From NCBI GenBank assembly GCA_964035545.1, contig OZ037772.1, forward strand, positions 1,860,001 to 1,924,000: a stretch of 64,000 bases of DNA, written 5' to 3'. This document shows, in pieces, positions 23,151 to 25,506 of this stretch. Made by a program: the position numbers and the translations under genes. This DNA comes from Bugula neritina (taxonomy: Eukaryota > Animalia > Bryozoa). Position 1 is the stretch's first letter. Each line of letters opens with the position of its first letter. Under the pieces are notes generated by a model. It was not told the origin of the DNA, did no database searches, and was given only the letters and a program-made list of their open reading frames with translations.

Positions 23151-23485
23151 AAAATTGGAACAGGTTCTTCTCCTATAACAGTTCATTGAGTGTGGAGAAA
23201 GGCACTTCGATTTTGAACAAGATGCCACCCTTTTAGTGTAACTATAACAATACTGACGCTGCTATGAAAAGCAATGATATGATGATTGCACTCCTGCATG
23301 TTTAGGTTCAGATTATTTAGAGTAGCAAATATATTTACAAGGTATATATGTAGTATACAGTTTAAAAAGATTGACTATTACATAGCTGCTAAAAGGTGGC
23401 CTATTATTTTTAGCAAATTTTTTGACTTCCATTTGAAAGTAGCACAGAAAGCAGTTAGGGTAGAGTAATTAATAAACGAATGGTA

Positions 23486-23542
23486 CTCTGTTCTGTGCTG
23501 ATGAGGGGACAAACCCGAAACAGCTGCTGTCCACAGATTGAG
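23486..23542 (+). ncRNA. Type I hammerhead ribozyme, copy 1 (predicted cleavage after C23531)
   Basis: TCTGTG-CTGATGA-GGG(GACAAA)CCC-GAAA-CAG(CTG)CTG-TC^-CACAGA: complete CUGAUGA/GAAA/GUC core; stem I TCTGTG:CACAGA extended by CTC:GAG. Confidence 0.88.
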
Positions 23543-23693
23543 GTATATATATATATATATATATATATATATATATATATATATATATATATATATATAT
23601 ATATACATATATATATATATATATATATATATATATACATTTGAAAGTAGCACAGAAAGCAGTTAGGGTAGAGTAATTAATAAACGAATGGTA

Positions 23694-23750
23694 CTCTGTT
23701 CTGTGCTGATGAGGGGACAAACCCGAAACAGCTGCTGTCCACAGATTGAG
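23694..23750 (+). ncRNA. Type I hammerhead ribozyme, copy 2 (predicted cleavage after C23739)
   Basis: Identical to copy 1, 208 nt downstream. Confidence 0.88.
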
Positions 23751-23930
23751 GTATATATATATATATATATATATATATATATATATATATACATATATAT
23801 ATATATATATATATATACATATATATATATATATATATACATATATATATATATATATATATATATATATATATATATATATATATATATATATATATAT
23901 ATATATATATATATATATATATATATATAT

Positions 23931-25506
23931 ATGGAGGTCAAGGCCAGCAACGCAATATCAAGGTCAACTGGAAGAAAGTAGTTTTAGGTCACGACTTGTC
24001 ATTCTCAATTATGGCGGCTAGTTTGAGCACACTTTTGGACTAGAAGAGGAAGGAGACAAGGAGACCACAGAACTCTCTGGGGAGGGAGGTAAAACACGCT
24101 TCAGCTACAAAGCAAGAGTTGAAAAGAGAAATAATTGGAAAAAGTTGAAATTTTACTCCATTTGATCCAAAATTACCAGATATCAATAAGAGTTGCAATC
24201 ACATGTTCTCCTGTAGTTTTCAGAACAAAAGGATGCTTTTGTTGAGCAGAGTCTTGAGCTTGGTGACTTGACAAAATTGCTTTGATCTTAGATAAGTCAC
24301 AAAAGCATTTATTTGTAGTTAATCTGAATACTAATATAAGACAGTTATAAACTAGATCTTAGTTTTAGGTCATATATAGTATGAAATTTTACAGACATGA
24401 AGAAACAACTAAAGGAGGTGCTGGATGGGCAGAAAAAACTGATGGCTATAATCACTGATAGCCATAGTGGCAAAGACAATATAACTGAGCAGCTGGAGGA
24501 GCCGCTAAAAACAATACAAGAGTTTGAATCTCTTGAAGAACTTCTCCAATCCTCAAGAGAAAAACGTTCTGCTCTGGTACATAGTATACTACTATATAAT
24601 ATAGATTGTATAGCTAGTTTAAAAACTTTTGGTGTATAACATGCAATATATAACATCCTGGCGTAGTTGATATTAGAATACAATTTCTAGTGAACTGTAG
24701 ATTTTCAAGCTATAAAGTGTGTTTCTCTTATGGAATGTTTCTCATTAAAGTGTTAGAAAAAATATTTGCCCCACTGCAATAGCACATTGAATGTATTCAC
24801 GTAAATTCATGCTATGAAATATAGGTGCATTAATGTTGTAAACAAAGTTTCTTTTCCAACTGGGAGGAAAAAACTGCGCAGATATGGTGAAAAGAGCCAT
24901 GAGAAGAATTGGCACCAATGGGCTGTGGAGCCAATTCAGTATGAAGGGCAAAGCCCATAAACAACATAAAAAGCTGTCTCTAAAAATATATTGAAATAAA
25001 ATCTGTATCAAAACTTATCAAATCTCTGGGGCTGCATCAGCAGTTAGAATAGTTGTTGAGTTGTTGAGTTTAGAATAATTGCTCATCTAAAAATTTACTG
25101 CATTCACTAAGTTTTACTTTCTAATTATATTTCAGAAGCTCTGCTGAAAAGTAAAAGTAATAAAGAAATAGACATAGAGATTGAAGTATAGCTATTTTTG
25201 CCGCAGTGCCCTTATCAACTGGGAGGGGATAAGTATAAAAAGACAAGTTTGCAAGATGAGGTTTTTGTTCTGTTGTTTTTCATTTTTCTTAACAAAATAA
25301 AGTAGCCATTACAGAGATCGGTGTAGGATCGCCAACCTTTCACCAACGTTGTATGAAAACCATTTATGCAACGTTATGCAACACAACGTTTATGGAACGT
25401 CGGTGAAAGTTTTGCGATAAACGTTTGTTTTAAAAGTTGTATATAGTACAAAAATGTGTCGACATTTAAACGTTTATTAAACAATTTGTAAATTGTTGGT
25501 GCAGTG
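23931..25506 (+). mobile_element. 3' part of a CMC/EnSpm-like DNA transposon with spliced DUF4806-like accessory gene relic (copy 1)
   Basis: Exons MKKQLKEVLDGQ...REKRSAL / ...LGGKNCADMVKRAMRRIGTNGLWSQFSMKGK resemble DUF4806; AACGTT subterminal repeats at 25330-25480; terminus ...GGTGCAGTG (reverse complement CACTG) at 25506; acceptor mutated to AA and a ~290-bp deletion relative to copy 2. Confidence 0.6.

Follow-up and report, generated by a model that had tools for sequence, protein, structure and literature searches.

The two hammerhead motifs between positions 23430 and 23932 of the window (the whole 64-kb stretch of DNA analysed in this work) very probably mark the remains of a 272-nt retrozyme, a dead insertion at a (TA)n array that has lost its 5' part, retains only the last ~66 nt of the element, and was later duplicated in place (Table 1). 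Judged by its sequence features, the parent family is a metazoan non-LTR retrozyme. The 208-nt unit formed by the two copies is a one-off local duplication, because the 50 nt upstream of the ribozymes belong to R, an unrelated repeat. An earlier note on this DNA had assigned the locus to retrozymes or Penelope-like elements; the assignment is right at the level of the family, but no family of 208-nt or 114-nt units was found. The window locus itself, a broken and duplicated fragment of a published kind of element, matters little. The 272-nt family represents a clean natural record of animal retrozyme integration, with a fixed 3' end and with both truncated and whole units.

Table 1. Coordinates of the features discussed in the text (window positions unless a locus label is given)
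Feature	Position	Strand	Remarks
Repeat R	21710..23478	+	Unrelated dispersed/segmental repeat, cut off here at 23478
R-derived piece 1	23430..23479	+	49 nt from the end of R and 1 ambiguous A; contains AATAAA
Retrozyme stub 1	23480..23545	+	Unit positions ~206-272; core 23498-23531; predicted cut 23531/23532
TA array 1	23544..23637		(TA)31 CA (TA)15
R-derived piece 2	23638..23687	+	50 nt, duplicate; joined to TA array 1 via CAT microhomology
Retrozyme stub 2	23688..23753	+	Identical to stub 1; core 23706-23739; predicted cut 23739/23740
TA array 2	23752..23932		(TA)20 CA (TA)12 CA (TA)10 CA (TA)45
Repeat S	23931..24189	+	Second local repeat family, 5'-cut here
Distinct minimal hammerheads	L059-L073; L005:81-345; L007:1041-1440; L058:1501-1547	L005 -; L007 +	At 3' ends of RT/GIY-YIG elements

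Two hammerhead motifs in the window

A pattern search of the 64-kb window for the hammerhead core CTGATGA...GAAA...GTC returned three matches, compared with 0.2 expected from shuffled sequences. Two of them, both on the + strand, are the complete cores that the earlier note had described; these type I motifs are 100% identical, are spaced by 208 nt, and are each followed by a (TA)n array. The third match (41152-41213, - strand) has no hammerhead helices and is due to chance; it sits in GC-rich, probably coding, retrotransposon sequence. TRF identified a period of 208 nt with 2.0 copies and 98% matches (23430-23845) as well as both TA arrays, and the 114-nt non-TA parts of the two units are 100% identical. 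The "ORFs" between the two ribozymes are nothing but read-throughs of the TA repeat.

Each of the ~66-nt stubs contains a whole hammerhead, with CUGAUGA, GAAA, and GUC in the correct order and spacing in both copies and with the three helices of a type I ribozyme, of which helix I is open and helices II and III are capped. Helix I is formed by UCUGUG/CACAGA and is extended across a small internal loop by a distal ACUC/GAG pairing, and helix II has the 3 bp GGG/CCC closed by the loop GACAAA; the UCUGUG/CACAGA stem with its internal loop and the 3-bp stem II with its loop had been read in the earlier note. Helix III contains at least an A-U and a C-G pair, and up to 4 bp are possible (ACAG/CUGU, loop CUG). 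The predicted cleavage sites are 208 nt apart. The helix II of the window copies carries a 1-nt deletion, namely, CCC in place of the CCCC of the family (consensus GGGG/CCCC). Genome-wide, this CCC variant is present in only 5 copies at 3 loci, and it could be a homopolymer assembly error.

Minimum free energy (MFE) folding did not return the hammerhead junction. Since it gave another structure, the energy of the hammerhead fold was obtained by constrained evaluation, and the three-helix fold was predicted at -14.7 kcal/mol, as compared to -17.1 kcal/mol for the MFE structure, a gap of 2.4 kcal/mol. For helix III, the calculated energies are -1.2 kcal/mol as a hairpin and -15.5 kcal/mol as an intermolecular duplex; as the duplex is far stronger, dimeric action of the ribozyme is a reasonable idea according to these models. 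No Rfam hammerhead model exceeded its gathering threshold in the window or with the ribozyme alone, under permissive settings as well, and the best scores were 19.4 bits for RAGATH-1-hammerhead (threshold 56.3) and 12.1 bits for Hammerhead_3 (threshold 48.5). The covariance-model search suggested as a check in the earlier note gave no match above threshold at the genome level either, where RF00163 had zero matches over the cut-off in the 216-Mb assembly. Matches of mir-297, RUF2, and similar Rfam families within the TA arrays are spurious and due to low complexity.

The 272-nt parent family

When the 114-nt unit was used as a query against the 216-Mb genome, the window itself was the only full-length match, and only positions 51-114 recurred (804 candidates, 98-100% identity). 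What is multicopy and linked to (TA)n is, therefore, the ribozyme module of 64-66 nt and not the unit as a whole, and this module corresponds to the 3' end of a 272-nt unit and not to a 208-nt self-excising element, as had been proposed. At least 464 ribozyme cores were found within 2 mismatches of a 40-nt core pattern, and the reversed pattern, used as control, gave 0. Runs of cores are often spaced by exactly 272 nt, with up to at least 5 in a row. At the 28 loci read, comprising 43 segments, every array ends with GAGGTA followed by (TA)n. The parent unit begins with (T)TATGCTCTC... and ends with ...GUC/CACAGATTGAGGTA, the stroke marking the cleavage site, and successive units are joined directly, head to tail, without intervening TA, which contradicts the view that (TA)n is integral to the monomer. 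Arrays are made up of one truncated first unit and the whole units that follow it. This first unit begins at position 39, 44, 70, 113, 134, 143, 150, 175, 187, 196, 206, 227, or 238, among others, and these variable starts usually lie directly behind TA repeats. At loci L003 and L011, truncated copies also form inverted pairs.

The 272-nt unit is non-coding, the longest open stretch in a trimer being 49 aa; it has a low GC content (45.6%), lacks an LTR, a PBS, and a PPT, and is predicted to be strongly structured (-101.7 kcal/mol, z = -6.75). Metazoan non-LTR retrozymes have been described as non-coding, head-to-tail repeats of 150-450 bp with one type I hammerhead per unit (PMC7229834). The 272-nt family resembles these elements (Cervera and de la Pena 2020, PMC7229834) on all sequence criteria, and further features in common are the multiple copies, the self-paired monomer, and the co-residence of Penelope-like elements. 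The window, in contrast, contains only a ~66-nt 3' stub that was duplicated together with a foreign flank and TA, and its 208-nt period differs from the family unit. This 208-nt unit was met with at no other locus, and another repeat supplied half of its non-TA part, so that a recurrent head-to-tail unit of the size range given above is seen for the 272-nt family and not for the window. In a limited search of the retrozyme literature, no description of a strict (TA)n context like that of the 272-nt family was found.

Type I hammerheads are also known from newt satellite 2 and from Sm-alpha of Schistosoma, where they form part of tandem or SINE-like repeats, have a weak helix III, and may act as dimers. 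By analogy, the weak helix III is common to these ribozymes and to the window copies, for which activity is predicted only, whereas sequence and host differ.

Variation within the family is small. Among 21 distinct ribozyme variants, only scattered single-sided changes were seen, and diverged copies show random decay that includes the core. The copies are too alike for covariation to be seen among the ribozymes, and the family is too young to inform on it. A subfamily at loci L003 and L004 is older, is 94-95% identical to the main family, and differs at unit positions ~180-200. In L003/L004, the body hairpin GUAGAAAC/GUUUCUAC is shortened to GUAAAAC/GUUUUAC, and one G-C pair has been lost on both sides, a two-sided loss that hints at maintenance of the RNA structure of the retrozyme body. 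In four probable RNA runs, whose label is a guess and which include no silent control, contigs span the 272-nt unit in full, with a high summed depth, and such contigs cannot tell circles from tandem transcripts.

Origin of the 208-nt spacing and of the (TA)n arrays

The sequence on either side of the ribozymes belongs to other repeats. R was found in at least 99 candidate copies, most of which are on the window's own contig, and the 50 nt that precede each of the two window ribozymes are R sequence and not retrozyme. The AATAAA motif noted upstream of the ribozymes is indeed present (23471-23476), but it is part of the unrelated repeat R and is found in all R copies. In the other copies examined (at least 9), R does not stop at this position but continues as ...AATAAAC/ACATCC... 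or /GCATTC.... The sequence upstream of S in its other copies is unrelated. In the three closest paralogous units, the distance from the end of R to the start of S is 1.9-3.05 kb, and neither a TA array nor a hammerhead was found at the R end or the S start of these paralogues. As they have this DNA between R and S, the ~66-nt stub and the TA arrays appear to replace ~2-3 kb at the locus. The join between R and the ribozyme is a direct 5' junction outside a TA array, like those of a few other insertions of the family (C2:11944476 and C5:9208531).

Along ~0.1-4.1 Mb of contig C8, there are dozens of copies of R and dozens of S, nearly all of them oriented alike, and the window segments 21710-23478 and 23931-25500 are single copies of these C8 repeats. 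The R-to-S spacing along the first ~4 Mb of C8 varies from 1.9 to >10 kb. This region has the appearance of an array on the megabase scale, whose large repeat units are riddled with TEs.

The duplicated block at the window locus comprises 50 nt of R, the 64-66-nt stub, and ~94 nt of TA. Both TA arrays begin with the pattern (TA)x CA (TA)y CA, the CATTTG of the R piece follows array 1, and CAT is common to the array interruption and to R at the junction. The shared array pattern and the CAT microhomology suggest a microhomology-mediated tandem duplication of DNA. That the duplication took place at the DNA rather than the RNA level rests on this pattern and on parsimony. A similar duplicated block of truncated copy plus TA, with a period of 461 nt, was found at C3:19440325/19440786. 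At the window locus, the 5' end of the cDNA would have been joined inside R, outside the TA array, with a loss of ~1.9-3 kb of DNA relative to the paralogues; a microhomology-mediated tandem duplication with its right breakpoint at the second CA may then have produced the 208-nt period, and TA slippage may have followed. If the + strand were read through, cleavage by both ribozymes could yield a 208-nt RNA, which would be the product of a duplication accident and not of the life cycle of an element. The window thereby adds an example of the rearrangements that come with such insertions, in that ~2-3 kb were lost versus the paralogues and a duplication mediated by microhomology arose next to a long TA array.

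An RNA-level origin of the second copy is rather unlikely, but it is the best of the alternatives. According to this proposal, a transcript that was initiated in R and read through stub 1 and its (UA)n was reverse-transcribed by Penelope-like machinery into the adjacent TA array, which amounts to a 5' transduction with a product flanked by TA on both sides. The second copy (23638-23753) does show the signature of the family, that is, a TA array, an arbitrary 5' end, a terminal ...GAGGTA, and again a TA array, and copy 1 is contiguous with R, as expected of a source. However, the landing site is only 94 bp from the source, although TA arrays occur about every 20 kb; a duplication of DNA accounts better for the (TA)x CA (TA)y CA pattern that the two arrays share; and the hammerhead should remove the 3' 14 nt and the UA tail from such a transcript. 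We consider it improbable that copy 2 arose by retrocopying of a chimeric transcript made up of R flank, 66-nt ribozyme module, and UA tail. Were this the case, a 3' hammerhead module with a UA tract would be sufficient for mobilisation by Penelope-like elements, and transcripts could bring TA tracts to TA-free sites and so seed microsatellites.

Under the preferred reading, i.e., a truncated insertion duplicated as DNA, the (TA)n array looks like the target and not like a part of the element. TA is the sole abundant dinucleotide repeat in the window, whose 64 kb contain three TA-array loci, only one of them with retrozyme sequence. The array at 38405-38606 is long and interrupted and has no retrozyme; its downstream flank is paralogous to that of a retrozyme-bearing array in locus L005. 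Since family monomers are free of TA and empty TA arrays are common, the targeting of existing arrays is favoured over their seeding. The microsatellite link proposed in the earlier note is thus borne out as a genome-wide association that favours targeting, and its seeding component loses ground, as TA arrays without retrozymes are frequent. At the window locus itself, the paralogous sites are without a TA array; they hint that the TA tract may have been seeded or transduced there, and an array that preceded the insertion is presumed rather than seen.

The same observations bear on the original proposal, in which the 208-nt unit represents a true variant of the retrozymes, with (UA)n as an integral half of the monomer, that both targets and seeds TA microsatellites. 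It draws on the two intact cores 208 nt apart, on the paralogous "empty" sites that have no TA array, and on the (TA)n association, which is real across the family. Yet it is largely refuted by the failure to find the unit at a second locus and by the origin of half of its non-TA part as a fragment of the unrelated repeat R, and it is further at odds with family monomers that have no TA tract, and with TA arrays that far outnumber retrozymes, including a partly paralogous array without one. It is, therefore, very unlikely.

Penelope-like elements as candidate helpers

Penelope-like elements are known to prefer (TA)n targets (PMC8557442), and retrozymes have been described as non-autonomous derivatives of these elements (bioRxiv 10.64898/2026.07.22.740005). 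A Pfam search of the genome for GIY-YIG returned only 6 weak candidates. The weak matches led to 3' fragments in which a GIY-YIG ORF is followed by a minimal hammerhead, a short tail, and terminal (TA)n; in many cases, a truncated copy in inverted orientation lies next to them. One copy contains an open frame of 479 aa, in the translation of which RT-like and GIY-YIG-like motifs can be read. With this frame as a query, at least 810 candidate loci were found, many of which have uninterrupted frames of 700-740 aa. In the Atlas clusters nearest to the 479-aa frame, RVT_1, GIY-YIG, and HTH_animal are present. The best Pfam GIY-YIG match on the RT/EN frames reached 17.9 bits, and a PDB sequence search with the RT/EN frame gave no match. 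The annotation of these frames as putative Penelope-like RT/EN rests on the Atlas neighbours, the translated motifs, the 3' hammerheads, and the TA targets.

At least four to five distinct minimal hammerheads were found at the 3' ends of RT/GIY-YIG elements (Table 1), with the same core and different stems. Their helix III has the form GAAAC, 6-nt palindromic loop, GUH, with one C-G pair, and the loops of the different families are AAAUUU, AAUAUU, UAUAUA, and UACUAG. Behind each of these hammerheads come a short tail and then (TA)n. In one family, a stem II change is compensated, namely, GGGUAC/GUACCC versus GGGCAC/GUGCCC (L066 versus L069). Hammerheads in Penelope-like pseudo-LTRs were reported by Cervera and de la Pena (2014), as cited in PMC8557442 (Craig et al. 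2021), and they resemble those of the window in the GAAAC-loop-GUH helix III with a palindrome in the loop and in the location near the 3' end of the element. The window differs from such pseudo-LTRs in that no RT/GIY-YIG ORF lies between its ribozymes, which are only 208 nt apart. Compared to the Penelope-like hammerheads, the retrozyme helix I is longer and has an internal loop, and helix III may have up to 4 bp.

The preference for (TA)n and the tandem and inverted 5'-truncated insertions are common to Penelope-like elements and the retrozyme family. The co-occurrence with autonomous Penelope-like elements that is typical of retrozymes was also observed: retrozyme arrays and Penelope-like elements reside in the same TA arrays at L005 and L007, and coordinates of several further retrozyme cores coincide with RT/GIY-YIG loci. 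In a BLAST comparison of the retrozyme unit with the Penelope-like loci examined, no shared body or 3' end was found, and only nested retrozyme fragments matched. The linkage to a Penelope RT/GIY-YIG ORF that the earlier note proposed to look for was seen as shared TA arrays, and since no homology to the retrozyme was found at these loci, the helper role of Penelope-like elements is deduced from the shared targets only. The strict (TA)n context common to both supports the idea of retrozymes as non-autonomous parasites of Penelope-like elements.

A life cycle for the family may be envisaged on this basis. Tandem 272-nt units would be transcribed, and their hammerheads, which have a weak helix III and may act as dimers, would excise a 272-nt RNA with extensive base pairing, which probably becomes circular. 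An RT/GIY-YIG enzyme of the Penelope-like type may then nick (TA)n and prime on the UAUUAU at the unit junction, and copying could proceed beyond one unit length on a circular or multimeric template. Target-primed reverse transcription of circular or multimeric RNA is suggested by the fixed 3' end, the variable 5' end, and the arrays of more than one unit.

These data also bear on the least credible alternative, according to which the motifs match the hammerhead consensus by sequence only, have no catalytic activity, and belong to an ordinary SINE-like element or satellite: it would agree with the lack of Rfam models above threshold, of covariation, and of a hammerhead fold as the MFE structure, but it is opposed by the 464 copies in which the core nucleotides are complete and the three helices lie where they should, by the at least four unrelated hammerheads with the same core at 3' ends of RT/GIY-YIG elements, by the compensated stem II change in one of these, and by the demonstration that type I hammerheads of animal tandem repeats cleave (PMC7229834).

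Two additional observations concern individual loci. Three identical 5'-truncated Penelope-like 3' fragments are present at L053, L054, and L055 (C1:31411941, C4:21676527, and C6:1094585), with one in-frame TGA inside the GIY-YIG match. The segment L059:4652-6382 is open in 5 of the 6 reading frames, with more than 500 aa in each, and is presumably low-complexity DNA and not a gene.
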